Virus record (IMG/VR): IMGVR_UViG_3300028883_000032
Location: 1-64,000 of that record
Reading direction: 5' to 3' (one strand)
Length of the DNA: 64,000 bases
The notes beneath the pieces were generated by a model that was given only the letters and a program-made list of their open reading frames with translations, did not search any database and was not told the DNA's origin. How positions within the stretch are numbered: the stretch's first letter is position 1; the number at the start of each line of letters is the position of its first letter. Positions 9,753-49,314 of the stretch are shown here, piece by piece. A program made the translations under genes and the position numbers.

Positions 9753-9784
9753 ATAGTACGCCATTTTTTTAGCCATTTGAAGTA

Positions 9785-13313: not shown

Positions 13314-13315
13314 TA

Positions 13316-14047: not shown

Positions 14048-14052
14048 ATAAT

Positions 14053-16380: not shown

Positions 16381-16430
16381 CACCGACGCATATAAAATTA
16401 TACCAGCGTTTTTGAAAGCGCATTTAAAGC

Positions 16431-16979: not shown

Positions 16980-17347
16980 TGGCAAATTTAGACAGAGTTT
17001 ACGCAGGAAATGTTAATTCATTCGGACATCTACTGGACAGGCTGGTGGTGGAAAATATAAAGCTCACAAACTTCCTGAAAAGAATGGAAGCCGAACAAAG
17101 AAAAGAAAAACCGGATTCTGATTTAATAGTAAGATTAGATTTGGGACATCGCAAATCTAATGAAGCGCGCTCTGTAATAAAAAATGAGATAGACAGGCTT
17201 CTTAGTGATGTAATGGCCGCTGGGGAATACAGAATCATTGAGGAAACACGTACTTGGACTACCCCAAATGATCCACAAGATGCTTCAGTGGAAGAAGACG
17301 CATCTGGTGATAAATTAGAACTTAAAAAATACATGGAAAATAAATAA
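16979..17347 (+). CDS. small helical protein, DUF4254-like
   Basis: SFGHLLDRLVVENIKL..SNEARSVIKNEID pattern; within glycan cluster. Confidence 0.45.
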   Translation: MANLDRVYAGNVNSFGHLLDRLVVENIKLTNFLKRMEAEQRKEKPDSDLIVRLDLGHRKSNEARSVIKNEIDRLLSDVMAAGEYRIIEETRTWTTPNDPQDASVEEDASGDKLELKKYMENK

Positions 17348-18525: not shown

Positions 18526-18535
18526 GAGTAATAGA

Positions 18536-20151: not shown

Positions 20152-20557
20152 GATTCACAAGAACAAGGACAACAGGGGATTTTTTCAAGAAATACTGAAA
20201 ACCTCTCAAGTACCAGAAAAAATTGAGCAGATTTCTATCTCTGAAACTTATCCGGGAGTTATTAAGGCATTTCATAAACACGAACACCAATGGGATTATT
20301 GGTACTTGATATCGGGAAACATAGAGGCGAAGTTAGTTCATGAAAAGCACCAAATTCCCCTATCATACTATTTATCCGGGGACGACGATGTAATACTAGT
20401 AATACCCCCTTATTGGTACCACGGATACAAAGTTTTAGGTAACACTCCGGCAAAAATGCTATATATGGTTAGCACAGAATATAACCCTGATAGCCCAGAT
20501 GAAGAAAAGATATCTCCGTATTCTTATGGAGTTACGTGGGATACAGAAAACCGATGA
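20120..20557 (+). CDS. dTDP-4-dehydrorhamnose 3,5-epimerase-like cupin
   Basis: DNRGFFQEI, PGVIKAFHKH..QWD, IPP..YHG. Confidence 0.88.
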   Translation: MDHEFAPKIIKIHKNKDNRGFFQEILKTSQVPEKIEQISISETYPGVIKAFHKHEHQWDYWYLISGNIEAKLVHEKHQIPLSYYLSGDDDVILVIPPYWYHGYKVLGNTPAKMLYMVSTEYNPDSPDEEKISPYSYGVTWDTENR

Positions 20558-21318
20558 ATACTAAAATAAAAGATTTTTGGAATACAAGGTCTCTTGGTAA
20601 AAATCCGGGATCTGATGACTATCATATAAAAAATTTGGAGCTTAAAGCACTAATTAAAACTATACGCAGTATAGAAAACTCCCACAGCAATATCGCAGAT
20701 GTTGGGTGTGGAAACGGAGAAACACTTAACAAGCTGTGTGAGGTACTTAATTGTGCGGGTTTTGGGATAGATTATTCCAAAGGAATGGTTGATTCCGCAA
20801 ATAAGTTTGGCGGAGAAATGTTTGTAGAGGACGACATATCCGAAGACTTACAAAAGGACTATTTAGAGTCAAGTGTGGTTTATACGGAAAGATGCTTAAT
20901 AAACATATCACCAGAAAAAAGAAAAAAAGCTTTAGAGAATATTTATAAATTAGTAAAACCTAATGGATTTTATTTAATGATTGAAAGTTTTATCGAACCA
21001 TTAAATAGAATAAATGTAATAAGAGAAAAACTTAATCTGTATAGAATTGAACCTCCGTGGCATAACAGCTTTCTAAAAAGAGACGAAATAGTCAAATTAG
21101 CGACAGATTCGGGTTTTTCATTAATCGGAGAATACACATTCACAAGTTCCTACTACTTTTTGAGTAGAGTTGCTAATGCAAAGCTTTCAAATTTATTTGG
21201 CAGAACTCCCAAATACAACGACTTCTTAAATAATATAGGAGAGCACTTACCGTCTGTTGGGGATTTTGGTCCAGTAAAAATGTTAATTTGGGAGAAAGGT
21301 TGTCTTGAGAACAATTAA
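20554..21318 (+). CDS. class I SAM-dependent methyltransferase
   Basis: ADVGCGNG, GIDYSKGM, TERCLIN. Confidence 0.85.
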   Translation: MNTKIKDFWNTRSLGKNPGSDDYHIKNLELKALIKTIRSIENSHSNIADVGCGNGETLNKLCEVLNCAGFGIDYSKGMVDSANKFGGEMFVEDDISEDLQKDYLESSVVYTERCLINISPEKRKKALENIYKLVKPNGFYLMIESFIEPLNRINVIREKLNLYRIEPPWHNSFLKRDEIVKLATDSGFSLIGEYTFTSSYYFLSRVANAKLSNLFGRTPKYNDFLNNIGEHLPSVGDFGPVKMLIWEKGCLENN

Positions 21319-22405
21319 TTTATATAATCCAAACCTACAACTCCAAGATAAATTAGCAGTAATGGAAGCCCTTAATCTAGATTGGAGTTCTGGACAATAC
21401 TATAAACCGATAGAGCAGTTTGAAGCCGCTTTTGCAAATCGTGTGGGTCGCAAGTATGCGCTAATGACACCAAATTGTACAATAGCAATTGAACTTGCTT
21501 TACGAGCTCGCGGTATAAAAAAAGACAATTTGGTGGCCGTCCCAAACAATACATGGATAGGAAGCACAGCAGGGATACACACTGTTGGAGCTTCTCAAGT
21601 TGTGTGTGATGTTGGGCAACGAAGTTGGTGTTTAGAGGTAACTAATCTTATAGAAGCTGATTATAGATTAAACGCAGTGGTGGTTGTAGATTTATTTGGA
21701 CAAATGCCGGACTATAATTCATTATTAAATTATACAGAAAAACACGGCATATTCGTAATTGAAGACGCTGCGGAAGCATTAGGTTCAACATATAATGGAA
21801 AACCCGCTGGCTCTTTTGGGGATGTTAGTGTCTTCAGTTTTCATCGTTCAAAAACCATCGCTTGTGGAGAAGGTGGAATGGTAGTAACAGATAACGACAA
21901 ACTTTACGAGATGATGTGGACACTGCGCGATCAAGGCAGACCAAAAAGTTGCGAAACCTATAAAAATGAATACCTAGCACATAAATTTATTCCATCAAAT
22001 ATGCAGGCAGCTCTAGGATTAAGCCAGCTTATGAGGTTAGACAGCATTCTAGAACATAAGAGAAGGGTATTTAGGTGGTACCATAAACACATCAATATGG
22101 ACGACAAGTCTCTAACTCCTGATATCCCAGGAGTAAGTAATTCATATTGGGTACCTATTTTAGTATTTAAGGATAACACAATTAATACTGATTTTGTAAT
22201 TAACACATTAGCGAAAAATGGAATTTACACCAGGCGGTGTTTCTACCAACTATCAGAATTACCAGCATACTCAAGAATAGGGTTTTTTAGAAATAATACG
22301 CCTAATTGTAAATGGTTACAAGACCATGCCATTAATTTACCATCTCCGATGGATTTAACAGAAGAAGATGTCGAAAGGATAGCAGGAGTAATCAATATAT
22401 TATGA
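21305..22405 (+). CDS. DegT/DnrJ/EryC1/StrS sugar aminotransferase (perosamine synthase-like)
   Basis: IEDAAEALGS, SFHRSKTIACGEGG. Confidence 0.92.
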   Translation: MRTINLYNPNLQLQDKLAVMEALNLDWSSGQYYKPIEQFEAAFANRVGRKYALMTPNCTIAIELALRARGIKKDNLVAVPNNTWIGSTAGIHTVGASQVVCDVGQRSWCLEVTNLIEADYRLNAVVVVDLFGQMPDYNSLLNYTEKHGIFVIEDAAEALGSTYNGKPAGSFGDVSVFSFHRSKTIACGEGGMVVTDNDKLYEMMWTLRDQGRPKSCETYKNEYLAHKFIPSNMQAALGLSQLMRLDSILEHKRRVFRWYHKHINMDDKSLTPDIPGVSNSYWVPILVFKDNTINTDFVINTLAKNGIYTRRCFYQLSELPAYSRIGFFRNNTPNCKWLQDHAINLPSPMDLTEEDVERIAGVINIL

Positions 22406-22977
22406 AAGTTCAGCTAGGGGCGGGCGATGACCCCAAGAGGGGTTATACAAACGTAGATTTATATGAAACAATCCCAGATGGAGATTATACATACATCTCT
22501 AAAGATATTTTTGAATTTTTGGAAGAAACACCTGATAATTCACTAGATGAAATTTATGCTAAATGGTTATTTGAACACATCGCTTTTCCTGATGAGGAGC
22601 GTTTGTGGAGAGAATGTTACAGAACTCTTAAGCCGGGAGGGAAATTACAAATATATGTACCAGATTTTGAATTTTTATGTGAGCGCTTTCTCAAGGCTAA
22701 AGAAGGATTTAAGGGGTTCTATAAACTGACTACACCGGACGACCCAGCTTACGGTTTTGGGTTTGGCTACGATCGTGAAATAGAAAATAGGTGGGGTACT
22801 CTTATGGTATTTATGTTTGGAGTTCAAACCAACCCAGGACAATTTCACAGGAATGCCTATACAGAACAAAGAGTAATAGATATATTTAATTACATTGGAT
22901 TCACTAATATTGAAACCAACCTTGTAATGGAACGAAATATTAGAAACGTAGATGCAATAGGAATTAAACCGGAATAA
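22402..22977 (+). CDS. class I SAM-dependent methyltransferase (paralogue of 16431-16979)
   Basis: QLGAG, FEHI, RTLKPGG..VPDFEF; shares RWG..FG.Q.N.G..H.NAYT with 16431. Confidence 0.85.
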   Translation: MKVQLGAGDDPKRGYTNVDLYETIPDGDYTYISKDIFEFLEETPDNSLDEIYAKWLFEHIAFPDEERLWRECYRTLKPGGKLQIYVPDFEFLCERFLKAKEGFKGFYKLTTPDDPAYGFGFGYDREIENRWGTLMVFMFGVQTNPGQFHRNAYTEQRVIDIFNYIGFTNIETNLVMERNIRNVDAIGIKPE

Positions 22978-22992
22978 CAGATTAGTAATACT

Positions 22993-23424
22993 ATGGAAAA
23001 GCCAACTACTATTAAGGACGTAAAACTAATTGAGTTTAATCAAATCAAAGAGAATAACGGAACTCTAGTACCAATAGAGGACTTTGAGCTTCCATTTGAA
23101 ATTAAACGCACATTTTACGTCTATAAAGTAGACTCAAACGACCTTAGAGGACAGCATGCTCACAAACAAGGAGAGCAAGTTCTAATATGTTTGGGAGGCA
23201 CTTTAGTATGTATGGTAGACGACGGGGTGGATAGAAAACATTTTGTTTTGGATTCACCAACGCAAGGTTTGTACATTCCAAAAATGATATGGGATGAACA
23301 GATATACATATCCAAAGACACTTTAATGCTATCGTTAGCAAACAACAACTACGACTCCGAGGACTACATACTAAACTATAAAGAATTCCGACAATTAAAA
23401 ACAGAAAATAATGAAAATGGCTGA
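22993..23424 (+). CDS. FdtA/QdtA-family sugar 3,4-ketoisomerase
   Basis: PFEIKRTFYVY, RGQHAHK, GLYIP.MIW. Confidence 0.9.
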   Translation: MEKPTTIKDVKLIEFNQIKENNGTLVPIEDFELPFEIKRTFYVYKVDSNDLRGQHAHKQGEQVLICLGGTLVCMVDDGVDRKHFVLDSPTQGLYIPKMIWDEQIYISKDTLMLSLANNNYDSEDYILNYKEFRQLKTENNENG

Positions 23425-24265
23425 ACAAACAACAGTTTTGGTGCTAGGAAGCAAAGGCTACATAGGATCCAGAATATTACAACAACTAAAAAAAGAACAG
23501 TCTGCTTTTAAAGTTGTTGAAGATGGTCGTGAATACGACCTCTTGGAATTGCAGCAGGTACAAAAGCTGTATGATAAACAACACATCGATGAGGTTATTG
23601 TAGCAGCTGGAGTAGGAAACCGAGCTTCAGACAGAGATTCTATGTGGGCTATGATGGAAAACATACAAATTACAGCCAATGTTCTTTACACCTTTGGCGG
23701 AAATTGTAATATTGTATACCTAGGAACAGGATTAGACGACAAGTATGAGGGTTCTTATTATCAAAGAGTAAAGCACATATGCAGACTAATGACTGCTGAC
23801 TTGTGTAAGAACGAAGGTTTGGGGGATGTTACCCATGTGAGGCTATTCCATGTATACGGGCCAAACGAGCCAAAATACAGATTAATACCCTTTATAGTTA
23901 ACCAAATAAATACTAAAGGCGTTGTTAACTTGGAGCGTAATATTTGTATAGACCCGCTACATGTAGATGAAATATGCAAAACTATATGTAATTACGTCCG
24001 TCGCGGACACGACAAAGTACAAAATGTATGGAATGTGGGTACAGGGACCGGAACATTAATTAGTGATCTAGCAAAACAAATTGCTGTAATTATGGGAAAA
24101 CCCGAAACGCCTATAATCTGTAACCCGTACTGTGTATCACACCATAATTATGTTCCCGAGGGACCCTACTTAAATCAAAGGGAACTACAACCAGAAGAGC
24201 ACATTTGGCTAGAGGAAGCATTGCCAGAAATTGTGACATCATATACCAAAACATACCATGAGTAA
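23411..24265 (+). CDS. NAD-dependent epimerase/dehydratase
   Basis: GSKGYIG, YxxxK, RLFHVYGP. Confidence 0.82.
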   Translation: MKMAEQTTVLVLGSKGYIGSRILQQLKKEQSAFKVVEDGREYDLLELQQVQKLYDKQHIDEVIVAAGVGNRASDRDSMWAMMENIQITANVLYTFGGNCNIVYLGTGLDDKYEGSYYQRVKHICRLMTADLCKNEGLGDVTHVRLFHVYGPNEPKYRLIPFIVNQINTKGVVNLERNICIDPLHVDEICKTICNYVRRGHDKVQNVWNVGTGTGTLISDLAKQIAVIMGKPETPIICNPYCVSHHNYVPEGPYLNQRELQPEEHIWLEEALPEIVTSYTKTYHE

Positions 24266-25217
24266 ATTAGTAATAACCGGAGGATTGGGCCACATAGGAT
24301 CTGTAATATTAGCTAAACTATCCAATTTACGCGATTCCGGTAGAGGCTTTAGCGAAATAGTCATTATTGATGCATGTTTACAAAGACAAGAAACAGTATT
24401 CTTTGATAGTAATATCCCGTTGAGAAATTTTAAATTAATACAAAAAGTATTACCAACAGACAATATAGATGATGTGGTGGAAGTGCTGGATGGGGCGGAT
24501 GCCGTTATACATTTAGCAGCTGTTACTGATGCCCCAAGCACCTTTGAAAGACCCGAATATACGAGGATAACAAATGTTGATTCCACAAAACAACTTGTAA
24601 ATGCATGTGAAAAGGTGGGAGTGAAAAAATTTGTGTTTGCGTCGTCTACAAGTATATACGGGCCCTCCAAGAAAGTAAACTTAGAAAACGATGCATGCAT
24701 AAACCCACAAACCCCGTATGCCAGATCAAAGTTAGCCGCGGAGGATTTAGTATCCAAAACTGATATGAACTACGCAACATTCAGAATGGGTACAATATAT
24801 GGCTACACTCCCGGTATGCGTTTTCATACCGCTGTAAATAGGTTTATTTGGCAAGCTATAACCAAACAGCCAATCACCATCTGGTCAGGGGCAGCGGACA
24901 GTGTTAGGCCATATTGCCACGTGTATGCAGCATGTGAGGCTATGCTTCGATTTGTGTCACCAGTAAAGGATACCAAATCTGGAATCTATAATATAGTCTC
25001 TGATCACTATACCCCCAACTCCATAATTGAAGTTATCAAACAGGAGATCCCAAACGTAGAAGTGATAACAACCCCAACAAGAATACTTAACCAAGATTCT
25101 TATTTTGCACCTAATGATAAAGCCAATCAAGCCGGTTTATTGAAACAAGAATATGTGGGAAATACTGACCACTTATTAGATTACATTCGCTACATCAAAA
25201 CCAAGTTTGAAGGATGA
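24258..25217 (+). CDS. NAD-dependent epimerase/dehydratase
   Basis: TGGLGHIGS, HLAA, SSTSIYG, YARSK. Confidence 0.9.
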   Translation: MSKLVITGGLGHIGSVILAKLSNLRDSGRGFSEIVIIDACLQRQETVFFDSNIPLRNFKLIQKVLPTDNIDDVVEVLDGADAVIHLAAVTDAPSTFERPEYTRITNVDSTKQLVNACEKVGVKKFVFASSTSIYGPSKKVNLENDACINPQTPYARSKLAAEDLVSKTDMNYATFRMGTIYGYTPGMRFHTAVNRFIWQAITKQPITIWSGAADSVRPYCHVYAACEAMLRFVSPVKDTKSGIYNIVSDHYTPNSIIEVIKQEIPNVEVITTPTRILNQDSYFAPNDKANQAGLLKQEYVGNTDHLLDYIRYIKTKFEG

Positions 25218-26308
25218 TATTAACAAGTAGGCCTTGTATAGGCAAAGAAGAACAAGATGCGGCTATGAGGGTTTTAAAAAGTGGATGGTATATACACGGT
25301 CAAGAACTAGAATCATTTGAAAAAGAATTCGGAGAATATCACTCAACACATTGGTGGGGTAAAGAAGCCGTTGGAGTAAGTAATGGCACAGCCGCGCTAT
25401 TTTTAACTTTGCAGGCATACGGTGTTGGTCCGGGTGACGAGGTTATAGTACCTGAAGTGACTGCATTTCCTACAGCAGAAGCTGTCTGGCAATGTGGAGC
25501 GACTCCCGTTCCTGCCGCCGTTCATCCACATTCAAAATTACTTGACTTTCGTACAATAAAAGATTATACTACAAGTAGAACTAAAGCAATTATAGGTGTA
25601 CATTTATATGGGCAACCTTTACAAACAGTTGACTTTTATCAATTTGCACGTTCAGAAAATCTAATTTTTATTGAAGATTGTGCACAAGCTTTTGGAGCAA
25701 AATTAAACGATTTTCCCGTTGGTCTTTGTAGCGATGCCTCGTGCTTTTCTTTCTATCCTACCAAAAATATTACAGCTGCAGGGGATGGAGGAGCGGTTAT
25801 TTGCACACCAAAAATCGCTGACAAAATTAAGAAGTTAAGAAACCACGGAATAGTAAATTGTACTTGGGACCACACTGAAGTTGGTTGGAACTTCAGGATG
25901 AGTGAGCTGTCTGCGGCTATTTTAAGAGAACAGCTAAAAAAAGTAGACTGGTTTATTGAAGAACGCAGGAAACTAGCATTTAATTACATTGATTTGTTAT
26001 CTACGTTTCAACCATACAATAATGGGTCGAAAGCGGACAGATATATAATCCCCAAAACTTATACTCCGGGAGCCAAACACTCTTATCACTTATTTGTGAT
26101 TCAAGCAAGAAACATACGCGATTTAATGTGTACGGAAGATAATTTCAGCCTTATTGATGTAAAACCCGGGTATCATTATCCGTATACTATTACATCAAAT
26201 CGAGATAAACCAATTCAAAGTATAGACAACTTTAATTGTATTAGCCTTCCTTTGTATGTAGGCTTAACAGAAAAAGAGCAAGAACTAATAGTAAACCACA
26301 TATTTTAA
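25214..26308 (+). CDS. DegT/DnrJ/EryC1/StrS sugar aminotransferase
   Basis: SNGTAAL, IEDCAQAFG, SFYPTKNITAAGDGG. Confidence 0.92.
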   Translation: MILTSRPCIGKEEQDAAMRVLKSGWYIHGQELESFEKEFGEYHSTHWWGKEAVGVSNGTAALFLTLQAYGVGPGDEVIVPEVTAFPTAEAVWQCGATPVPAAVHPHSKLLDFRTIKDYTTSRTKAIIGVHLYGQPLQTVDFYQFARSENLIFIEDCAQAFGAKLNDFPVGLCSDASCFSFYPTKNITAAGDGGAVICTPKIADKIKKLRNHGIVNCTWDHTEVGWNFRMSELSAAILREQLKKVDWFIEERRKLAFNYIDLLSTFQPYNNGSKADRYIIPKTYTPGAKHSYHLFVIQARNIRDLMCTEDNFSLIDVKPGYHYPYTITSNRDKPIQSIDNFNCISLPLYVGLTEKEQELIVNHIF

Positions 26309-30055: not shown

Positions 30056-30445
30056 ATGACAGACATACTGAAACAGCAAGTTGGGGGTAGAACTAAATTT
30101 TTAGAAGTGGTTGATGTACAGATTAACAAGGAAACGTCAAGGGAAGGCGTGGAAGGTGAAAAAGCTGCGTTAATCTGCAATTTTAATGGAACCCATAGAT
30201 TCAAGGTAGATGAAATGTTGTTACATGATAGAAATGGGAATCTTCATGCAACAGGTTTATGGGTAAACACAAACGCAGACGGAAGCCACAAAGATACATC
30301 AGCTATCGCAAGAATACTGCGATACTACGGCGCTCCTACACTAGAGGATTTAGTCGGCAAAACAGTTAGGACACTGCCCAAAAAAAGCAATTACCTGGCT
30401 CTTGCCGCAAACGATGAAGTAACAGAAGAAGCCTTACCTTGGTAA
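30056..30445 (+). CDS. hypothetical protein, possible ssDNA-binding protein
   Basis: Beta-rich body with acidic tail ending EEALPW, reminiscent of SSB tails. Confidence 0.4.
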   Translation: MTDILKQQVGGRTKFLEVVDVQINKETSREGVEGEKAALICNFNGTHRFKVDEMLLHDRNGNLHATGLWVNTNADGSHKDTSAIARILRYYGAPTLEDLVGKTVRTLPKKSNYLALAANDEVTEEALPW

Positions 30446-30475
30446 GGCTTCCCCGCACTACAAACCAAATAGACT

Positions 30476-32785
30476 ATGTCGACTTATGACGTTAATTTTA
30501 GAATACTAAAGCTAAGAAACGAATTAAACGGACTCGGATTATCAAAAAACGCACTTGATCAAACACTTTACAATTGGGTCCAATTTAACAATAAAATAGC
30601 AAACTATTCGTTAAAATTCGGCGGATTGACTCTTATTAAAAAATTGGAATTACCACAGCAGGCTCCAGTATTTAAGAACCTATCCATAGCTTTAAAATGG
30701 GAGACACCGACAGCATTATATTCAGCTGACAGTGCCCAAGATGTAAATATATACATTTTATCAGATAGCTCTAACTTTGGTATCATCCCCACCAACAAAA
30801 TACTAATTATTCCGCCCAAACGAGATTATCACTTTTATAGTCTAACTGAGGCTGTTACAGTTGATGAGGAAAACATTGAAGAGGGGTTTCTTCAGGTTGT
30901 AGATTTTATTAATGGTATTAAAGATGATCTGCTAATTCCTTACAACATGACAAACCTGCTACCAAGCAAAGTACAAACTGAAGTAAGTTTAAGAAAGCAT
31001 TATTACGAAAACGGCCTACCCTTGGTAGACTTTAATAAGATGTGTGAGTATAGTAAAGAGCAACGAGATGAAATTGTAAACAAATGGTGTGAGCTTACTC
31101 TTCATTCCACATTTGAAAAAGCTTTTCCGAATGTATACTCTTACTACAATGATATCAAAAACTATAAATACGAAAACCCAATGTATGGAAGAATAGTAGA
31201 CGTTGCCGAACACAAAGATAATGGTGACAGATACTATATTATCGCTCTCCCAGAAAGAAAGAAGTTGGGGTTGGAAAAAATAGTAATAGAGGGAGTAAAG
31301 AATCTAAAACTAACTTCCGGTAAGATAACATCAAAATCGGAATACTGGCCATACATTGATGTTGGTAGGTATTTGTATTATCGGGTGCCTGAGATAGTAA
31401 TTAACCGTATAAAAGGAGACAGTCCTGGGGATAGGGCCATTAGGACCTATTATTACCATAACGATTATTATAGGACTGGTACACGAGACCCCTTATCAGA
31501 GATTTGGGGGATGTTCATAGACGAAAACCCCCTTCTACCTCAAAACCCAATACCTTTACAAAATCATTTAAATGACGATCACAGAAGAGTACAGGAACAA
31601 AATTTTGTAACCTTGCTAGATAATAGGCAGGTTAAAAGATTAGTTAAACAGCATGAGCAAATTCAGGATCGGCTAAAAAAAGAAGAAAAGCTGGAAAAGC
31701 TTTTAAAAACAAAGTGGGAACATAAATTTGAAATACTCAACGAAGACCCGTCGGCTTCCATACAATTAGATGACATAATATTCACAGGTAAAAGGGCGAT
31801 ATTTAGACCGCCAAACGTAGATGACCCTGAGCAGCCTATTGAATGTTCTGCCATAAAAGTAACCGACGTATTAAGAAGTCTTCTTTCTAAGCATTCTCCT
31901 GATCAAATATCGTTTCTTATGTATTTAGAGAATCTTTCTGCACATATTATTAAAAAAGTAGTAGAAGAGGGTAAAACTAATAATGTTACGGGAGTAATAG
32001 GAAACATTTCCTATAAATTACATTTTACCGAGACAGAAACAAAAACTGGCAGTTGCATGAGAAGGTACTTTATAAATGGGTATCGTGTAAACAAAGATGA
32101 AATGGCTCAAATACTAGATGCAGGGCTTTGTTTCAGAAGTACTCCAGAGTTTAATTCTTGGTTAAAAACCGTATCTAGATATTCGTTAAGAATACACGGA
32201 TTGATACAAAGAGGACTTGAGGCATCAGTTACGGATTCTTTAGCCTTTGACAACAACAAAAAATTCAATATAAAACTAACCTTGGAAAGACACGGTAGTA
32301 GGAATTATATTAAAAATGAAACCGATCTTTTTCAGATTCACGATATAAATAGGTTAGAAACAATCCAACGAGCGCGTCAGATGGATCATATAATATCCAT
32401 ACTTACCGATCCAAAAATATCAGATATTGGATACGAACATGTTACAAAAATACTCAAGGATGCCAGAAAGTACTACGAAGATGCTATTGAAAAAAGTCAA
32501 GCACTGCTTAATAAAACAATAGAGAAATATGGAGTTGTTAAAGATACAAAAAATGGCATGAATGGGTATGTAGTACAAGGAAAATTAAGATCGTATTTCA
32601 TAGAGCACAGTAGCAACGCAACCGTTTATTCATTGCCTAAAATGAGGCCTCTTTGCATAGTTGAAAAAACAGGCCACGGCAGAGATCCAAATGACCAAGT
32701 TGGCATGGATAAAATATATAATAGAATAATGATGCTGCGAAATGACCATCTTGTATTAGATAAAGTTCACACTTTAAACTTTTAA
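30476..32785 (+). CDS. large hypothetical protein heading the Ubl/JAB/E1 module 1
   Basis: 769 aa; coiled-coil segments; C-terminal VQGKLRSY.I..LCIV..D..ND domain with a single Cys. Confidence 0.7.
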   Translation: MSTYDVNFRILKLRNELNGLGLSKNALDQTLYNWVQFNNKIANYSLKFGGLTLIKKLELPQQAPVFKNLSIALKWETPTALYSADSAQDVNIYILSDSSNFGIIPTNKILIIPPKRDYHFYSLTEAVTVDEENIEEGFLQVVDFINGIKDDLLIPYNMTNLLPSKVQTEVSLRKHYYENGLPLVDFNKMCEYSKEQRDEIVNKWCELTLHSTFEKAFPNVYSYYNDIKNYKYENPMYGRIVDVAEHKDNGDRYYIIALPERKKLGLEKIVIEGVKNLKLTSGKITSKSEYWPYIDVGRYLYYRVPEIVINRIKGDSPGDRAIRTYYYHNDYYRTGTRDPLSEIWGMFIDENPLLPQNPIPLQNHLNDDHRRVQEQNFVTLLDNRQVKRLVKQHEQIQDRLKKEEKLEKLLKTKWEHKFEILNEDPSASIQLDDIIFTGKRAIFRPPNVDDPEQPIECSAIKVTDVLRSLLSKHSPDQISFLMYLENLSAHIIKKVVEEGKTNNVTGVIGNISYKLHFTETETKTGSCMRRYFINGYRVNKDEMAQILDAGLCFRSTPEFNSWLKTVSRYSLRIHGLIQRGLEASVTDSLAFDNNKKFNIKLTLERHGSRNYIKNETDLFQIHDINRLETIQRARQMDHIISILTDPKISDIGYEHVTKILKDARKYYEDAIEKSQALLNKTIEKYGVVKDTKNGMNGYVVQGKLRSYFIEHSSNATVYSLPKMRPLCIVEKTGHGRDPNDQVGMDKIYNRIMMLRNDHLVLDKVHTLNF

Positions 32786-32797
32786 CCATTATTAGTA

Positions 32798-33619
32798 ATG
32801 TACAAACACGACGAACCACAGAAAATCAAATTTAGTGTTGTATCCGTAAATGGGGACGATGAATTTGAAATGTTTCCAGCGGATGCTTTGGAAGAAATGA
32901 AACGTCTAGTAAATAACCATGGAAAATGGTTATATGAAGACGGTGACATAGTAAATGTAATGGATCTTACTCCTGGAGATCTAAACCCGAATAGAGATTA
33001 CGAACTTGGAAATCTGTTAAAGGGCGGTGTAGCCATAGATGAATCATGTCGGGAGACAGAAAGCGATGGGTGCTGTTGTGAACCAGAAGGTCGCTGTGAT
33101 GAGACTTCAAAACAATTAGAACTTGGAGATCCACAAAAGTATTTTTACTCCACACAACTTAATACAGTGGATAATCAGGAATTTGATTTTATGATCTGGG
33201 TCAATGATGAAAAGAAAGAAATTACTGGCCAACTACGTAAGGATCGCGGAAGATTTTATGTAGCTAATAGAGACGACATCGCAGAGATACTATATTCTGT
33301 ACTACACAATCTGAGTGTTGTGGAGACTCGAAAAATAGCAGAACCATTGAACGTGCCGTCATATGAATTTCAATTCCGTAATACTCGTACACGTATTGCT
33401 GAAGGATACAACTTCTTTTTTGATGTTTCTGGTGATCCAATGATAACCTTAAACTACGACATTAAAGATAACATACTGACCGTTGGGATTAATAACAACT
33501 TAAGGTTTAGAGCCATGAAGCATCAACGAGAACTAAAAGCTTTTGTTGGTAAGCAAATGGTAGCATTCGGACAACAGTATGTACAGGACATGGCGAAGCT
33601 AACAGGCCTTCGCGGCTAA
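32798..33619 (+). CDS. putative ubiquitin-like (beta-grasp) domain ending in GG, fused to C-terminal domain
   Basis: 77-aa N-terminal unit ending ELGNLLKGG, Cys-rich acidic linker, ~190-aa C-domain; adjacent to JAB and E1. Confidence 0.55.
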   Translation: MYKHDEPQKIKFSVVSVNGDDEFEMFPADALEEMKRLVNNHGKWLYEDGDIVNVMDLTPGDLNPNRDYELGNLLKGGVAIDESCRETESDGCCCEPEGRCDETSKQLELGDPQKYFYSTQLNTVDNQEFDFMIWVNDEKKEITGQLRKDRGRFYVANRDDIAEILYSVLHNLSVVETRKIAEPLNVPSYEFQFRNTRTRIAEGYNFFFDVSGDPMITLNYDIKDNILTVGINNNLRFRAMKHQRELKAFVGKQMVAFGQQYVQDMAKLTGLRG

Positions 33620-33644
33620 TAATATTACCATTTAACGGGAGTGT

Positions 33645-33679
33645 GGTGGGTTAGATTAAGCTCTAACCCACCTTTTTTT
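33645..33679 (+). terminator. rho-independent terminator
   Basis: GGTGGGTTAGA-ttaagc-TCTAACCCACC + T7. Confidence 0.75.
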
Positions 33680-33685
33680 AATGTT

Positions 33686-34117
33686 ATGAAAAGACAAATT
33701 TACATAAAAAACAACTTAATAGAGCACTTTGATGTATTAGGAAGAGCATACTACCCACAAGAAATTTGTGGCATATTAACTGGGCGAAACTTAAATGGAT
33801 TGTATACAGTACGTAATTTTCACTGGATAGATAACATCAGTAAGGAGCCCGGTAAATGGGATTTTACAATGGATCCCGAACAATATATGGATGTAGTAAG
33901 GGCCTTTATTAGTTCCAAATTCTCGGAAGTAGTGGGTATTTTTCACACTCACCCCAATGGTCCAAGTGTTCCTTCACTTATAGACACGAAGTATGCAACC
34001 CAAGCAGGAGATAAGATACCGTGGGTAATATATTCTGTAAGAGATAAACAGACTCAATCTTGGTACTATAATGGTAAAGAATTTGAACTTATGGATGTAG
34101 AGGAAATATATGAGTAA
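33686..34117 (+). CDS. JAB/MPN (Mov34) metalloprotease
   Basis: PQEICGIL..HTHPNGPSVPSLID (E..HxH..S..D). Confidence 0.92.
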   Translation: MKRQIYIKNNLIEHFDVLGRAYYPQEICGILTGRNLNGLYTVRNFHWIDNISKEPGKWDFTMDPEQYMDVVRAFISSKFSEVVGIFHTHPNGPSVPSLIDTKYATQAGDKIPWVIYSVRDKQTQSWYYNGKEFELMDVEEIYE

Positions 34118-34733
34118 AGTAAAAGTAGCTATTGTTGGTCTTGGGGGCATTGGTTCTTGGCTAGTCAACCATATTAATTGGTTGGTAAATAGGGGCCAAA
34201 TAGACACGTCATTAATTGAATTTCATGGATATGATGATGATGAAGTGGAAGACAAAAATACACGCTATCAATGTTTTGAGCCAGAAGATATATTTGACTC
34301 TAAAGCAGCTGCTCTTGAAATTAGATTCTTACCCGTTAGTGGAGAACACTGGTTTTTTGGACACGAAGAAAGAATTACAAATGTGGGAAAACAGCTTGGA
34401 GATGCAAACCTTATTATCTCGGCTGTCGATAACCTCAAGTTTAGAAAGGCTCTTTTTGAGTTCTGCTTGGATAAAGAGATCCACTGGTTTGATTTTCGTT
34501 CAGAAGGACGAGCTATAATGGCTCTAACCAAACACCCCTCCAACAATGTTGAAAAGCTTGAAATGTTTACTGCTGGAGATCAAGAAGAGAACGGATCATG
34601 TCAATTAGCAGCCGATTTGGAAAAAGGTTTAGTGCAACTTGGCAATCAAATTATTGCTCAAATAGGGGCTCAATACCTGCTAAACTGGTGGAGAGACATC
34701 CCTAATCCAGCACAATTTATAAGGAAGTTTTAA
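34110..34733 (+). CDS. ThiF/E1-like adenylating enzyme
   Basis: GLGGIGSW, DDDEVEDKNTRYQ, K, AVDNLKFR, D.RSEG, candidate catalytic Cys GSCQ. Confidence 0.9.
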   Translation: MSKVKVAIVGLGGIGSWLVNHINWLVNRGQIDTSLIEFHGYDDDEVEDKNTRYQCFEPEDIFDSKAAALEIRFLPVSGEHWFFGHEERITNVGKQLGDANLIISAVDNLKFRKALFEFCLDKEIHWFDFRSEGRAIMALTKHPSNNVEKLEMFTAGDQEENGSCQLAADLEKGLVQLGNQIIAQIGAQYLLNWWRDIPNPAQFIRKF

Positions 34734-34970
34734 ATATGTCAATGTTTAGCGACATCTCCGATGAATTCTGGGCAAAGAGAATCTCAGAAGTTTTAATCGA
34801 AGTATACAAGTCTGGAAACGAAGAGCATAAGCAATTTTGTAAAGCTAAAATACTACCTCTTCTAGACTATAGCAACTCCTTTGAAGTCGTAAAAGAAGAA
34901 GAGGAAGCTAGAAAATTATATAAGGAAGTACCGTGAAAGTTTATGATGTATGGATGGAGAGTTTTGGATA

Positions 34971-36517: not shown

Positions 36518-37079
36518 TGGCAGACTTCCCCCATTAATTTACTACCAAAAAGGAGTATGATTATGACTAATCTACCAGTAGAAAAATGGGGATTTGATGA
36601 CATTTTTGCATCATTCGGTGGTTTTTTCGATAGTATGTTTAAACCCAGTAGTCTCGTTAGACAGGGGTTTTGTAAAACTCCAGACCAGTCTTTTCCTAAA
36701 TTTGATTTGAACTACCTTACAAATCAGAACGGAGACAATACAGGTGTAGTAATGCATTGTACAGTGCCAGGATGGGATAATGGTGGGCTGTCAGTGAAAG
36801 TTGAGGAAATTAACAGTAACATAGGAGTACTTGTTGTTTCCGGGGATAAACAAAATCGGCAGGAAGGTGAAAAAGCACAATTTAGCGGAATAAAACGAAG
36901 TAAGTTCCGTCGCTTCTTTGTGCTAAAACCTCTTGAAAAATATAATTTAGATGCGTTAGTAGCAAAATTAGAAAAAGGCATTTTAACAATAGAACTACCG
37001 TATAATGCGGAGTTTGATGTTGAGCAGGAAATAAAAGTTCGTAACATAGAAATCAATTAAATTGTGGGGAAGTCTGCCA
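36518..37079. repeat. 14-bp inverted repeat pair flanking the Hsp20 gene
   Basis: TGGCAGACTTCCCC at 36518-36531; GGGGAAGTCTGCCA at 37066-37079. Confidence 0.85.
36557..37060 (+). CDS. small heat shock protein Hsp20
   Basis: FP.FDL, VPGW, SGIKRSKFRRFF, AKLEKGILTIEL, C-terminal IEI. Confidence 0.85.
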   Translation: MIMTNLPVEKWGFDDIFASFGGFFDSMFKPSSLVRQGFCKTPDQSFPKFDLNYLTNQNGDNTGVVMHCTVPGWDNGGLSVKVEEINSNIGVLVVSGDKQNRQEGEKAQFSGIKRSKFRRFFVLKPLEKYNLDALVAKLEKGILTIELPYNAEFDVEQEIKVRNIEIN

Positions 37080-38920: not shown

Positions 38921-39629
38921 ATGCTCGACCCGTTAGGTGATAGAATGAAATCTTACGAACGTGTAACTAGTTCGGTGATTGTTCCCAGAACCCCGGTTAT
39001 CTTAAGGCTTGATGGGAGATCGTTTCATACTTTTACAAAAAAAACTTGATAAACCATTTGACGAGCGAATGAGACAAGCGATGTATGCAGCAATGGAATC
39101 GCTAATGTCTAGTATATCGGGAGCCGAAATTGGATTCACACAATCCGACGAAATAAGTATTTTTGTAAAAACTTATAATAAGTTTGAAACACAAGCTTGG
39201 CATGGTGGAAAAATACAAAAAATGATATCTTCTGCTGCAAGTATTGCAACAGCGTCTTTTATACAATACTTGAGTATGTTTGAAGCCCTTCAAAAACACG
39301 CATTTACAGCAACTTTTGATTGTCGTATATTCAACTTACCATTGGAGGAAGTCGCCAATTACTTCCTATGGAGAGGAAAAGATTGTTTTCGTAACGCAGT
39401 TATGGCTTACTATTTATCACTCAACTCGCATAAATCTGCGCAAAATAAAAGCACTTCAGAACTATTGGAGTTAATTCCAAAACACAACTGGAATACTGTT
39501 GCAGATGAGTCAAAATTTGGTATTTTACTATTTAAAGACAGTGATACAACTAAACGTTCTTACTCATGCCCGATAGGAGACATGTTAAAGAACGTAAACG
39601 ATGTAGTAAATCACAGAGAAGACCAATAG
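38921..39629 (+). pseudogene. tRNA-His guanylyltransferase Thg1-like, frameshifted at an A8 run (39037-39044)
   Basis: LGDRMKSYE..ILRLDGRSFHTFT in one frame continues KKLDKPFD..TQSDEIS..FDCR..NYFLWR in the next; A7 would restore the frame. Confidence 0.85.
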
Positions 39630-41716: not shown

Positions 41717-42559
41717 ATGAAGTTTACCTTTTTAGGCGTTGGGGGCATGTTCGCAAAAACTCTCGGCCATACCAACATACTAGTAGAGTTTACAAGCGGG
41801 TATAAGTTACTAATTGACTGTGGAAATAGAGCACCGCTTGAACTATACCAGCGAGGATTATACCCACAAGACATTAACGGGTATTATATATCCCACCTGC
41901 ATGACGACCATGTTGGAGGAATACAAGAATTGGGGCTGTTTGCATATTTCCACCCCAATTGCCATTTCAAGCCTGATTTGTTTATTGCCCAACAACTTCG
42001 TGGGGAAATTTGGAATAACTGTTTAATGGCCGGAATGTCCAGTATTGAAGGCAGTGTTATGTCCCTAGAAGATTACTTCAATGTTGTGTCTATTCCCCCT
42101 AATGGTTCTTTTGGCGTAGTAAAAGACCGCAGAGACGACTCTGAAAGCAGCGTCTTGGCCATTGATGCTAGGTTTGATGGTTGGAAATTATCCCCCGTTC
42201 AAACAGCACATTTCATGAATGGAAGAATAATTGTTCCATCCTTTGGGTTATTGTTTGAAAAAGGGGACGACAAACCAACCATTTTCATTACAACTGATAC
42301 CCAATTCGCACCCCATCAGATACAAGTGTTTTACGAAAAAGCTGATGTCATTTTCCAAGACTGCGAAGCGGCACCATATAAAAGCGGAGTTCACGCTCAT
42401 TTTGATGAGCTTGTCACTCTACCAGAAAAAATACGTAGGAAAATGTGGTTTGTACATTATCCTGATACTGTTCTCGAAGATATAAACACTTGGAAAATGA
42501 AGGCAAATGGAAGCGGGTTCCTTGGGTTTGTAAAAAAAGGACAAGAATTCGAGTTTTAA
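41717..42559 (+). CDS. MBL-fold metallo-hydrolase (RNase Z-like)
   Basis: FLGVGG, LIDCG, SHLHDDHVGG, TTDT, HAH, VHY. Confidence 0.88.
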   Translation: MKFTFLGVGGMFAKTLGHTNILVEFTSGYKLLIDCGNRAPLELYQRGLYPQDINGYYISHLHDDHVGGIQELGLFAYFHPNCHFKPDLFIAQQLRGEIWNNCLMAGMSSIEGSVMSLEDYFNVVSIPPNGSFGVVKDRRDDSESSVLAIDARFDGWKLSPVQTAHFMNGRIIVPSFGLLFEKGDDKPTIFITTDTQFAPHQIQVFYEKADVIFQDCEAAPYKSGVHAHFDELVTLPEKIRRKMWFVHYPDTVLEDINTWKMKANGSGFLGFVKKGQEFEF

Positions 42560-42560: not shown

Positions 42561-43307
42561 ATGAACGAAAACGAAGCAAAGACTCAACTGATCTTGAAGG
42601 GGTATGGTGGGTCCATTGCTTACGGAACAAATACCCCATCAAGTGACGTTGATTTAAGGGGGGTATTTATTCCTCCAAAGGAGTACTGGGTCGGGTTAAA
42701 GAGTGTGGATCAAATAAATTTTTCCGCAGAAGACACGACTTTCTACTCTTTACAAAAATTCTTTATGTTGGCTATAAAAGCTAACCCAAACATCCTTGAA
42801 CTATTATGGTTACGAGATAATCATTACATTTGGAAAGACGTACCAAAAGATTTCCGTAGCCTAGGAAGAAAATTGATAAGTAATAGGAATCTTTTTCTTT
42901 CAAAAAACATAAAACACACATATACCGGCTATGCCTATTCTCAACTTCATAGAATGGATAAGTTAAACAAGAACGTAGCACAAAATGCAGACCGTACAGC
43001 TCGCGTAGAGAAATTCGGGTATGATACTAAAAATGCTATGCATTTGATACGGCTACTACGTACTGGTCTGGAGATTCTTACGGAAGGCGAATTACATGTA
43101 TTTCGAGAAGATGCCCGAGACCTTTTAGCCATCAAGGATGGGAAGTATACTTACGATGAGTTGGTGGAAAAAGCCCAGCGTTACGACGAACTCATTGAAG
43201 AGGCATATGTTCGCAGCCCATTGCCACATAAACCGGATTTTAATGCTATTCAGAATCTACACATGGAGATGGTGGAAGAAGCTCTATCCATTTTAAACAA
43301 AAGGTAA
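42561..43307 (+). CDS. predicted nucleotidyltransferase (pol beta-like superfamily)
   Basis: GSIAYGTNTPSSDVDLRGVF, NPNILE, GYDTKNAMHLIRLL. Confidence 0.85.
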   Translation: MNENEAKTQLILKGYGGSIAYGTNTPSSDVDLRGVFIPPKEYWVGLKSVDQINFSAEDTTFYSLQKFFMLAIKANPNILELLWLRDNHYIWKDVPKDFRSLGRKLISNRNLFLSKNIKHTYTGYAYSQLHRMDKLNKNVAQNADRTARVEKFGYDTKNAMHLIRLLRTGLEILTEGELHVFREDARDLLAIKDGKYTYDELVEKAQRYDELIEEAYVRSPLPHKPDFNAIQNLHMEMVEEALSILNKR

Positions 43308-49294: not shown

Positions 49295-49314
49295 CTCAGG
49301 AGTAGAATTTCAAG

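Follow-up and report, generated by a model that had tools for sequence, protein, structure and literature searches.

A large uncultured marine-sediment phage carries, next to its DNA-replication genes, a conserved five-gene cassette that appears to be dedicated to a ubiquitin-like modifier: the predicted modifier (Ubl), an E1-like activating enzyme, a JAB/JAMM metallopeptidase and two novel partner proteins. To date, such cassettes have been studied as bacterial anti-phage defences and not as phage genes, and no cultured phage carries this one. The cassette was found in a window of 64,000 nucleotides (positions 1 to 64,000 of IMG/VR record IMGVR_UViG_3300028883_000032), which belongs to a 206,856-bp viral contig. 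The most probable reading, to which we assign a probability of roughly 0.55, is that the Ubl is matured by JAB, adenylated by the E1 and conjugated to protein, with the 700-aa protein of the cassette (B720) as transfer partner or substrate; conjugation itself is inferred.

Gene content and conservation of the cassette

The initial annotation, made from the sequence alone, described an intact JAB protease overlapping a ThiF/E1 gene, preceded by a protein with an N-terminal 77-aa unit ending LLKGG and by a 769-aa protein with a single Cys in its C-terminal domain, without thiamine, molybdopterin or cysteine biosynthesis genes nearby. These observations were confirmed, and all four open reading frames exist as described. 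However, a fifth conserved gene, encoding an OB-fold protein (A125), had been missed and lies just outside the region considered, and the start of JAB had to be corrected. The real start is almost certainly ATG 33686 (MKRQIYIK...) and not GTG 33641, since the former agrees with homologues and the longer frame would run through a terminator-like hairpin (33645-33672) followed by T7. The JAB and E1 genes overlap by 8 nt (34110-34117). The 769-aa and 273-aa frames share a reading frame, separated by TAA plus 4 codons, which is coincidental because in relatives the two genes are in different frames or overlap by 4 nt.

Features of the cassette (positions in the 64,000-nt window; residue numbers refer to each protein)
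Positions	Strand	Feature	Characteristics
30056-30445	+	A125, OB-fold, SSB-like protein (129 aa)	First gene of the conserved cassette; no conserved Cys
30476-32785	+	B720, multidomain protein (769 aa) of a large uncharacterised phage family	Variable N-terminus, long coiled helix (aa 383-423), conserved C-terminal half
32393-32782	+	C-terminal domain of B720 (aa 640-769)	Invariant Cys727 (codon 32654-32656) in VYxYPxGxYICIVDK
32798-33028	+	Predicted ubiquitin-like domain (aa 1-77 of a 273-aa protein)	NLLKGG at residues 72-77; GG codons 33023-33028
33029-33142	+	Disordered acidic, Cys-rich linker (aa 78-115)	Predicted JAB cleavage site G77|V78
33143-33619	+	Accessory C-terminal domain fused to the Ubl (aa 116-273)	Three strands plus two helices, then two strands plus two helices (model)
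33645-33679	+	Intrinsic-terminator-like hairpin followed by T7	11-bp stem, 6 G-C pairs; between the Ubl gene and JAB
33686-34117	+	JAB/JAMM metallopeptidase (143 aa from ATG 33686)	E26, H87-x-H89-x7-S97-xx-D100
34110-34733	+	Minimal E1-like adenylyltransferase (207 aa)	Gly-rich loop G10-G13, D42xD44, N50, K65, D107 (codon 34428-34430), R112, invariant C164 (codon 34599-34601)
34736-34936	+	66-aa ORF	Uncertain member of the cassette

Conservation of the neighbourhood, the absence of which had been named beforehand as a condition that could refute the initial reading, was strong. The E1 homologues formed 47 clusters at 90% identity, and among the 30 lineages with at least 4.3 kb of upstream DNA, B720 was present in 30, the Ubl in 30, A125 directly upstream of the large protein in 28 and JAB in 28; the recurrence of the same gene order in 30 of 30 independent lineages is far beyond chance. 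Distant B720 members (P0164 and P0144) are still followed by a 71-77-aa gene, JAB and ThiF. In 15 of the 30 lineages the E1 gene is directly followed by a gene for a small protein with the motif FHNW...C-x7-8-C-x2-C (D99), whereas the 66-aa ORF occupying this position in the window is not detectably related to D99 and lacks the Cys motif.

The neighbours of the cassette are RecU-like, dUTPase-like, ribonucleotide reductase, metallophosphatase, methylase-like, HSP20 and Thg1 genes and tRNAs. No thiamine, molybdopterin or cysteine-synthesis family was found among them, and no rhodanese, desulfurase, PP-loop ATPase, ThiG, MoaE or CysM was found in the neighbourhood of the window or in relatives.

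Sequence and structural evidence for the individual proteins

The N-terminal unit of the 273-aa protein was predicted by AlphaFold to adopt a beta-grasp fold (beta-beta-alpha-beta-beta-(3-10)-beta, pLDDT 84-96), and Foldseek matched it to ubiquitin-like proteins, SUMO/Smt3, Urm1, MTH1743, HVO_2177 and SAMP-like folds with probabilities up to 0.99. No Pfam or PDB sequence match was detected, so that it represents a new Ubl family by sequence. In relatives the Ubl is usually a free 75-aa protein, and GG is invariant in 25 aligned Ubls. Of 43 distinct Ubls, 23 end exactly at GG, 14 have 1-10 extra residues and 5 are fused to a domain, which is the pattern reported for type II Bil Ubls (PMC10557695). 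All three JAB-less lineages have a Ubl ending exactly at GG; the correlation between a C-terminal extension and JAB presence is consistent but not statistically significant. Residues 74-115 of the window's protein have pLDDT below 50, and the linker is not conserved in the other fused forms. The accessory domain (pLDDT about 75-85) was found only in fused forms (the window and loci L012, L044/45 and L046), with weak mutual similarity, and is absent from most lineages.

JAB matched Prok-JAB at 4e-15 and the desampylase model NF041370 at 3e-21, the latter below that model's cutoff, and its full JAMM motif can be read directly from the sequence. The closest solved chains are 2kcq, 2kks and the SAMP-cleaving Pyrococcus JAMM1 (5ld9/5lda). 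The E1 matched ThiF PF00899 at 1.5e-11 (44 bits against a cutoff of 28), and its best NCBIfam model was PRTRC_ThiF at 5.5e-14, which is below cutoff (52 bits against 145); the nearest plasmid proteins are PRTRC ThiF at 24-33% identity. The ATP-binding and Mg-Asp residues are invariant, and C164 aligns with E. coli ThiF Cys184 (in ERNCRTAG) and with the PRTRC ThiF Cys, whereas both ThiF CxxC zinc motifs are absent. The N-terminal half matches UBA6, UBA5, UBA3, ThiF, TcdA and MccB, but the conserved Arg of NxxRQ is replaced by Tyr53. JAB and E1 look catalytically intact.

B720 was an orphan in a word-based search, but a profile of its C-terminal region found 569 representative clusters (451 at E<=1e-10), nearly all of 600-800 aa. 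In 132 sequences R252, D295, Y707, C727 and D757 are invariant, and C552 is also conserved; in the 769-aa protein itself C727 is the only Cys in the last 130 aa. A confident AlphaFold model (pLDDT 82.8, above 90 in the C-terminal half; pTM 0.72) shows a C-terminal domain with a long helix (653-685), a five-strand meander (688-726), Cys727 in a conserved loop straight after the last strand and helices at 745-768. No UBC/E2/RWD structure or other fold match was found in the PDB, and only three unnamed viral proteins matched in BFVD. Pfam scans of the 132 individual C-terminal domains gave no UBC, Prok-E2 or RWD hit but a weak, recurrent DUF7737 match in 32 of 132 (best 4.9e-5); no PDB sequence match was found for this domain, no recurrent Pfam family was found in aa 1-639, and profile comparison with PRTRC protein B was negative.

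For A125, the ESM Atlas model (pTM 0.76) has viral hypothetical clusters as its nearest structural neighbours (TM 0.7-0.8), followed by DUF669, RPA/MEIOB OB and archaeal Ssb-like OB domains (TM 0.4-0.5). Many homologues carry an acidic C-terminal tail ending LFD/LFE.

Proposed function and alternative interpretations

In the mechanism that we consider most probable, the Ubl of this phage is made as a precursor with a 196-aa tail, and JAB would cut after G77 to expose the Gly-Gly carboxylate, in parallel with the processing of eukaryotic ubiquitin fusions, type II Bil Ubls and QbsE. The E1 would then bind the Ubl and ATP and adenylate the terminal glycine, and may hold the Ubl on its crossover-loop Cys164. 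The activated Ubl would be passed to a protein amine, either directly without an E2, as in archaeal SAMPylation or Thermus TtuB, or through Cys727 of B720, which would then be a non-UBC transfer enzyme, or the main substrate. JAB would also reverse the modification. Considering that the cassette sits among replication and nucleotide-metabolism genes, that it includes an SSB-like protein and that in one divergent locus (L009) Ubl-E1-JAB lies next to a protein with weak Hus1/PCNA clamp matches, the likely targets are DNA-replication or repair proteins of the phage or host, although this idea rests only on synteny, an OB fold and one locus with weak matches. Gene content, the modelled Ubl fold, the catalytic motifs and the conserved linkage are established by the present analysis, whereas cleavage, adenylation, thioester formation, conjugation, the targets and the activity of the terminator-like hairpin are inferred.

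The initial interpretation of a phage-encoded conjugation system in which the 769-aa protein is a divergent E2 or the target is partly supported. Its phage origin, the predicted beta-grasp Ubl with a GG end, the intact-looking JAB and E1, the conserved neighbourhood including the 769-aa protein and the absence of sulfur-metabolism partner genes are all in its favour, but the E2 reading is not supported, and the computational evidence does not distinguish between a target and a non-UBC transfer enzyme. No UBC-type E2 or known E3 is present, and the E1 is very small, without a separate catalytic-Cys domain or UFD, so that its chemistry could differ from that of canonical E1s. In addition, JAMM peptidases also serve sulfur-carrier pathways (CysO/Mec+ and QbsE/QbsD); JAB does not by itself prove conjugation, and its presence in most lineages whose Ubl already ends in GG fits deconjugation but also release of a small-molecule adduct.

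A sulfur-carrier role remains possible, although it is less likely. In this view, the E1 would adenylate the Ubl, which would be converted to a C-terminal thiocarboxylate using host persulfide donors, B720 would be a new sulfur-accepting enzyme (for example, thiolating tRNA, a nucleotide or DNA), and JAB would only mature precursors or release an adduct, as Mec+ does for CysO. The ThiF-family E1 with its Cys at the position of ThiF Cys184, which forms the acyl-disulfide with ThiS, the resemblance of the Ubl model to the sulfur carriers MTH1743 (ThiS-like) and Urm1, the two conserved Cys of B720, the location among nucleotide-metabolism genes and the heavy investment of the phage in tRNA functions (21 tRNAs, Thg1-like and RlaP) are compatible with it. 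However, besides the lack of sulfur-metabolism families at any locus, B720 matches no known sulfurtransferase by Pfam or fold search, the E1 lacks the rhodanese domain and zinc motifs typical of MoeB, ThiF and UbaA, Foldseek ranks conjugated Ubls (ubiquitin-like, SUMO) above ThiS-like folds, and the strictly linked OB-fold partner has no counterpart in known sulfur-carrier pathways.

It is doubtful that only Ubl-JAB-E1, with or without the small Zn-motif protein, form the functional system and that A125 and B720 are ordinary replication proteins merely syntenic with it. The terminator-like hairpin implies a possible partial transcriptional separation of A125-B720-Ubl from JAB-E1, A125 looks like an SSB, and the region is a conserved replication block (RecU, dUTPase, RNR, sigma factor, DNA polymerase A) whose synteny could be inherited; yet B720 is immediately followed by the Ubl gene in every locus examined, often with a 4-nt overlap, across very divergent members and while flanking genes change. 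Locus L009 has a wholly different context (methylase, HATPase/SACS protein) but still carries a B720 homologue with Ubl-E1-JAB, and no B720 gene was seen without an adjacent Ubl-sized gene. Counter-defence, in which JAB would strip conjugates made by host immune systems (type II CBASS Cap2/Cap3, Bil, Bub) or the Ubl/E1 would act as decoys, is unlikely. The window does encode another anti-defence gene, an Apyc1-like anti-Pycsar protein, but a decoy or deconjugase would not need its own E1, Ubl and two co-conserved partners, the JAB is closer to stand-alone archaeal/bacterial JAMM1-type enzymes than to Cap3 models (only a 0.067 hit to the cap2_3 model), and the cassette lies in the replication block and not among accessory genes. 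Least likely is an MccB-like attachment of a nucleotide or small molecule to the Ubl C-terminus: the E1 profile also matches MccB in the adenylation domain and the E1 is atypical (Tyr in place of the conserved Arg, no E2), but a folded 75-aa beta-grasp protein with an invariant GG and a dedicated JAMM peptidase is the signature of Ubl activation and not of peptide-antibiotic maturation, and no export or immunity gene was found.

Comparison with known ubiquitin-like systems

The archaeal SAMP/UbaA/JAMM1 system and Thermus TtuB/TtuC similarly combine a small beta-grasp protein with a C-terminal GG, a single ThiF/MoeB-type E1 and a stand-alone JAMM peptidase without a UBC-type E2, and the best named matches of the JAB are the desampylase model and Pyrococcus JAMM1. 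However, the E1 here has only 200 aa and no rhodanese domain or zinc motifs, the Ubl has no sequence similarity to SAMPs, two obligatory extra partners are present, the cassette is encoded by a phage and all matches are below family cutoffs. The PRTRC (ParB-related, ThiF-related) cassette of conjugative plasmids and ICEs, which by gene content probably corresponds to operon type 6d of Iyer et al. 2006 (PMC1779556; this equivalence is our inference), contains the nearest relatives of the E1, has JAB directly upstream of and overlapping the E1 with a small Ubl gene upstream, and is carried by a mobile element together with a DNA-binding protein. In contrast, the phage cassette has no ParB, and PRTRC proteins B, C and F, from a cassette whose own function is unknown, show no profile similarity to B720 or the Ubl.

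Similarity to Bil and CBASS is functional only, and membership of either fails. Type I and II Bil (BilABCD) systems share Ubl, JAB deubiquitinase and E1, and their Ubl has a conserved Gly followed by 0-9 variable residues that the peptidase removes (PMC10557695), but these bacterial antiphage systems have a UBC-fold E2 (BilB) and a two-domain E1 with a catalytic-Cys insertion, whereas no UBC fold was found here and the E1 is a single short adenylation domain. Type II CBASS Cap2/Cap3 likewise uses an E1-type adenylation enzyme and a JAB peptidase that controls a conjugation reaction, while the phage cassette has no CD-NTase, E1-E2 fusion or effector and carries a dedicated beta-grasp Ubl in place of the CD-NTase C-terminus. 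The lambda/T1-like tail-assembly Ubl (TAPI) is also a phage-encoded beta-grasp domain ending in Gly, fused to a C-terminal domain and associated with a JAB peptidase in the JAB-NlpC/P60 protein TAPK (PMC1779556), and the PHROG hits of the JAB are these tail proteins; however, that system has no E1 and sits in the tail module, whereas the present cassette has an E1, no NlpC/P60 domain and a location in the replication module. Finally, the ThiS/ThiF and MoaD/MoeB sulfur-carrier pairs share the ThiF-family adenylation domain with the Mg-binding Asp and the Cys184-equivalent Cys, as well as a beta-grasp partner ending in GG, but the phage cassette has no ThiG/ThiH/MoaE-type acceptor genes or zinc CxxC motifs and contains a JAB peptidase and two unrelated conserved partner proteins.

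Gene content and conservation of the cassette

The window is the first 64 kb of the 206,856-bp viral contig IMGVR_UViG_3300028883_000032, which comes from a marine-sediment metagenome, and among sequencing runs only this source DNA run was found to hold the sequence. All genes of the window are on the + strand, and there are 21 tRNA genes. The observation of the initial annotation, namely a large protein, a protein with an N-terminal unit ending in Gly-Gly, a JAB peptidase and an overlapping ThiF-like E1, was confirmed. The JAB peptidase was recognized by Pfam and NCBIfam (Prok-JAB, 4e-15; desampylase model NF041370, 3e-21, 75.8 bits against a cutoff of 130) and its JAMM motif E26...H87xH89x7S97xxD100 is intact. 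The E1 matches ThiF (PF00899) at 1.5e-11, 44.3 bits against a gathering threshold of 28.1, whereas its best named model, PRTRC_ThiF (5.5e-14), is below cutoff. Although the JAB ORF was initially listed from a GTG codon, a terminator-like hairpin lies between the gene for the 273-aa protein and JAB, and homologues begin like MKRQIYIK, which indicates that the downstream ATG is almost certainly the real start.

Coordinates of features in the window and in related loci (designated L003 to L038, contigs carrying homologues of the E1)
Location	Coordinates	Feature	Size or remark
Window	4202-4275	tRNA with anticodon CUA	labelled Pyl by ARAGORN
Window	9785-26308	block of sugar-nucleotide genes	a glycosyltransferase, two aminotransferases, a nucleotide-sugar epimerase
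Window	30425-30454	palindromic hairpin spanning the stop codon of the OB-fold gene (A125), just before B720	13-bp stem; no T-run on the + strand
Window	30476-32785	B720	769 aa
Window	32798-33619	protein with N-terminal predicted Ubl unit	273 aa
Window	33041-33100	Cys-rich part of the linker after the GG	aa 82-101 of the 273-aa protein
Window	33645-33672	terminator-like hairpin	followed by T7
Window	33686 (ATG start)	JAB peptidase	listed from GTG 33641
Window	34110-34733	ThiF-like E1	207 aa; overlaps JAB by 8 nt
Window	34736-34936	ORF after the E1	66 aa; unrelated to D99
Window	36557-37060	HSP20 chaperone	
Window	39009-39629	Thg1-like tRNA-His guanylyltransferase	
Window	41717-42559	anti-Pycsar Apyc1-like metallo-beta-lactamase	3.8e-24
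Window	42561-43307	RlaP RNA-repair nucleotidyltransferase	
Window	44765-49524	second Ubl-type module	
Window	47712-48605	protein with JAB-like motif, second module	297 aa
Window	48602-49294	ThiF, second module	230 aa; PF00899 5e-22
Window	49315-49524	ThiS/MoaD-like ORF, second module	69 aa; ends VVGN
L003	10594-10893	D99, directly after the E1	
L006	10588-10830	D99, directly after the E1	
L003	8692-9489	variable gene between Ubl and JAB	
L019	6722-7528	variable gene between Ubl and JAB	
L020	6749-7528	variable gene between Ubl and JAB	
L031	6741-7562	variable gene between Ubl and JAB	
L038	6884-7564	variable gene between Ubl and JAB	
L009 (JGI 3300022539)	1-12424	divergent, GC-richer copy of the system	

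The E1 has homologues at 38-54% identity in metagenomes, and by retrieving their contigs and scanning IMG/VR and JGI metagenomes we obtained 87 loci, which fall into 47 clusters at 90% E1 identity. Iterated HMMs built for each gene revealed one fixed order: a protein of about 125 aa (A125), which the initial annotation had not listed, then B720, a protein of about 75 aa, sometimes a variable inserted gene, JAB, E1 and often a small Cys-motif protein (D99). Among the 30 clusters with at least 4.3 kb upstream of the E1, B720 and the 75-aa gene are present in 30, A125 and JAB in 28 each, and D99 in 15. D99 (65-107 aa) is conserved as QSxDFxEIxNxQ...FHNW..P..C-x7-8-C-x2-C, a likely zinc-binding motif, and recalls the metal-binding protein of other bacterial E1/JAB operons (PMC1779556). 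The variable gene (226-273 aa), found in several lineages, has weak helix-turn-helix matches, is unrelated to the C-terminal domain fused to the Ubl in the window, and looks like an insertion, possibly a mobile one.

The flanking genes belong to replication and nucleotide metabolism, with RecU, dUTPase and ribonucleotide reductase upstream, and metallophosphatase, sigma factor and split DNA polymerase A downstream. A profile of the B720 C-terminus retrieved 569 representative clusters (50% identity) at E<=1e-3, nearly all of 600-800 aa, and distant members are still followed by a 71-77-aa gene, JAB and ThiF. The divergent locus L009 lies outside the phage replication block and carries a DNA methylase, HATPase_c_3 proteins, a B720 homologue, a 1367-aa HATPase/SACS/NOV_C protein, a Ubl ending in GG, a 77-aa ORF, E1, JAB and a 266-aa protein with weak Hus1/PCNA_N/PCNA_C matches, which may represent a defence-island or archaeal-type context. 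No GenBank phage was found to carry the cassette: a DNA search and tblastn with the E1 and B720 gave no match, a second E1 query returned only unrelated short ThiF hits, and Microcystis phage Mel-JY01, the phage with the closest RNR, lacks it. A scan of species-representative genomes with an E1 pattern also found nothing; B720 alignments were too variable for such patterns to be made.

The genes for the 769-aa and 273-aa proteins share a reading frame and are separated by TAA plus four codons, which raised the possibility of a readthrough fusion. This was rejected, since the stop is TAA and not the TAG that the tRNA(CUA) of the window would read, and since in relatives the two genes are in different frames or overlap, so the shared frame is coincidental. 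The tRNA(CUA), of amber suppressor type, hints at TAG readthrough or recoding somewhere in this phage, but the cassette genes studied here end in TAA and need no recoding. The Apyc1-like, RlaP, Thg1-like and HSP20 genes lie downstream among the tRNA genes, and the sugar-nucleotide block suggests glycan synthesis or glycosyl modification of DNA or proteins. A second, different Ubl-type module, probably that listed as module 2 in the initial annotation, consists of two paralogous proteins of 535 and 453 aa with no Pfam match, a protein with a JAB-like EVGW...HSHVNMGTTPSGQD motif, a ThiF and a ThiS/MoaD-like ORF; the phage thus encodes two E1 enzymes.

Sequence and predicted structure of the cassette proteins

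The 75-aa proteins align with residues 1-77 of the 273-aa protein and share an invariant Trp and an invariant C-terminal GG. Of 43 distinct sequences, 23 end exactly at GG, 14 carry 1-10 further residues and 5 are fused to a domain of about 160 aa, as here; the three lineages without JAB all end exactly at GG. An AlphaFold model based on this alignment gives a beta-beta-alpha-beta-beta-(3-10)-beta unit (aa 10-71, pLDDT 84-96), followed by a disordered linker (aa 74-115) and a separate alpha/beta domain. Foldseek matched the N-terminal unit to ubiquitin-like proteins, SUMO/Smt3, Urm1, MTH1743 and HVO_2177 with a probability of up to 0.99 at E about 1e-2, and the ESM Atlas structural neighbours agree. 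The presence of a beta-grasp fold, which had been proposed beforehand as a test, is therefore supported by the model, and since no Pfam or PDB sequence match exists, the Ubl is a new family by sequence. The linker holds six Cys in 20 residues (C..., CCC, ...C) within an acidic stretch; this is not conserved in the other fused forms and could be a metal site or could mean nothing.

Eighteen homologues of the E1 share GxGGIGS, DxDxVE.KN..YQ, K65, VDN(107), R112, IDLRSEG and GSC(164)Q. G10, G12, G13, D107 and C164 are invariant and align with a PRTRC ThiF and with E. coli ThiF: D107 falls on the TDN aspartate, which binds Mg, and C164 on the Cys of ERNCRTAG, that is, the crossover-loop Cys184 that becomes covalently linked to ThiS. 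Both CxxC zinc motifs of ThiF are absent. In comparison with the PDB, only the N-terminal half matches (UBA6, UBA5, UBA3, SAE2, ThiF, TcdA and MccB; E>=9e-6), and the Arg of NxxRQ is a conserved Tyr.

The AlphaFold model of B720, built from 132 homologues, is confident (pLDDT 82.8, pTM 0.72, above 90 for most of aa 340-769). R252, D295, Y707, C727 and D757 are invariant, and C552 and several others are nearly so. The suggestion in the initial annotation that this protein might be a divergent E2 was not supported. A Foldseek search of the PDB with the whole 769-aa model, rather than with the isolated C-terminal domain, gave no UBC/E2 among the best 50 hits and only spurious matches such as Mediator MED14 (TM 0.08) and an MHC-like fold (TM 0.05), and PDB sequence profile searches were negative. 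Per-member Pfam scans of 132 C-terminal domains gave no UBC (UQ_con), Prok-E2 or RWD hit, nothing recurred for the first 640 aa, and BFVD gave three unnamed viral proteins of 416-452 aa. The C-terminal domain runs helix, five-strand meander, Cys727 and helices and carries the motif VYxYPxGxYICIVDK; this order superficially recalls the UBC layout, but we do not count it as evidence. The single recurrent Pfam family for the C-terminal 130 aa is DUF7737, the C-terminal domain of DUF4132 proteins, which was hit by 32 of 132 members, with a best score of 4.9e-5 and 23.7 bits against a cutoff of 27. The top Atlas structural neighbour is a DUF4132+DUF7737 cluster, but only at TM 0.2, and hhalign against E. 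coli YehI, a DUF4132 protein, was negative. A literature search found nothing functional on DUF4132.

The ESM model of A125 is also confident (pTM 0.76), and its non-trivial structural neighbours are DUF669, RPA/MEIOB OB domains and archaeal Ssb-like OB folds. Many homologues end in an acidic tail with LFD or LFE, which is the arrangement of phage SSB tails such as those of T7 gp2.5 and T4 gp32. A125 has no conserved Cys, so it is not an active E2.

A putative phage-encoded Ubl pathway

The interpretation in the initial annotation, a phage-encoded conjugation system in which the 769-aa protein is a divergent E2 or the target, is only partly supported. What the analysis establishes is a conserved phage cassette with a GG-terminated, predicted beta-grasp protein, a JAMM peptidase whose catalytic motif is complete, a ThiF-type adenylating enzyme possessing the Cys of the covalent intermediate, and two tightly linked novel partners, without sulfur-metabolism genes. 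It is inferred from these features that JAB matures the precursor at G77|V78 and reverses adducts, that the E1 adenylates the Ubl and perhaps thioesterifies it, and that the Ubl is transferred to protein amines, either directly as in SAMPylation or via B720 Cys727, or onto B720 or A125 as substrates. We assign a probability of roughly 0.55 to this protein-conjugation reading.

Among the alternatives, a sulfur-carrier pathway with B720 as the acceptor enzyme is unlikely but carries the most weight; no ThiG/H, MoaE, CysM, rhodanese, desulfurase or PP-loop ATPase was found by Pfam or NCBIfam in the window, or in the Pfam lists of relatives. It is less likely still that A125 and B720 are merely syntenic with the other genes, and a counter-defence role or an MccB-like small-molecule modification, the latter being the least favored, appears improbable. 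A more far-reaching and less certain form of the protein-conjugation reading is that a clade of large uncultured phages runs its own complete Ubl conjugation pathway using no UBC-type E2, in which B720, through its invariant Cys727 in a DUF7737-like domain, would be a new kind of Ubl-transfer enzyme that, together with the OB-fold SSB-like partner, tags replication or repair proteins. This would be a viral, bacterial-world analogue of PCNA/RPA ubiquitination and SUMOylation.

To date, ubiquitin-like conjugation in the bacterial world has been characterized only as host immunity against phages (type II CBASS, Bil and Bub), whereas this cassette is on the phage side and is fixed in the replication module of a widespread group of large uncultured phages, with at least 47 E1 lineages. 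If it conjugates proteins, this would show that phages use Ubl tagging for their own biology, would offer a minimal E1/Ubl/JAMM system for study, and might give a first functional handle on the uncharacterized DUF7737 domain and on the unexplained PRTRC cassettes of plasmids. If it is instead a sulfur carrier, B720 would be a new sulfur-transfer enzyme.

Comparison with known Ubl, E1 and JAB systems

No paper in the literature searched describes a phage Ubl-E1-JAB cassette of this type, and the 2006 census of prokaryotic Ubl systems lists only tail-assembly Ubls for phages (PMC1779556). The nearest annotated relatives of the E1 are PRTRC ThiF proteins on conjugative plasmids (24-33% identity), and the PRTRC operon also has JAB directly upstream of ThiF and a small Ubl gene. 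However, the E1 scores only 52.1 bits against the TIGR03736 cutoff of 144.75, no other gene of the cassette has an NCBIfam PRTRC hit (the PRTRC system includes a ParB-family protein and proteins A, B, C, E and F), and hhalign of B720 and the Ubl against PRTRC B, F and C from a Burkholderia plasmid gave probabilities below 1%. The cassette shares with Bil (BilABCD) a Ubl with a conserved C-terminal Gly and a JAB peptidase, and the Ubl tails behave like those of type II Bil (PMC10557695), but no UBC-fold E2 was found by the searches described, and the E1 is a single domain of about 200 aa rather than an enzyme with inactive and active adenylation domains and a Cys-bearing insertion. In contrast to type II CBASS, in which a CD-NTase and an effector accompany Cap2 (an E1-E2 fusion) and Cap3 (JAB), neither a CD-NTase nor an E2-E1 fusion was detected in the neighbourhood of the window or in relatives, the only trace being a hit of JAB to a cap2_3 model at 0.067. 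The lambda-type tail-assembly pair (TAPI/TAPK) has JAB fused to or beside NlpC/P60 within the tail gene cluster and no E1, whereas here there is no NlpC/P60 domain, an E1 is present and the neighbours are replication genes. By these criteria the cassette is not a member of the PRTRC, Bil, CBASS or lambda tail Ubl/JAB systems.

In its inferred mode of action, the cassette is most like the E2-free archaeal SAMP/UbaA/JAMM1 system, and the Pyrococcus enzyme PfJAMM1 is among the four PDB sequence hits of its JAB. We regard it as a phage-borne Ubl/E1/JAMM system, related to those already described, which lacks a recognizable UBC E2, has two new obligatory partners and is embedded in the replication module.
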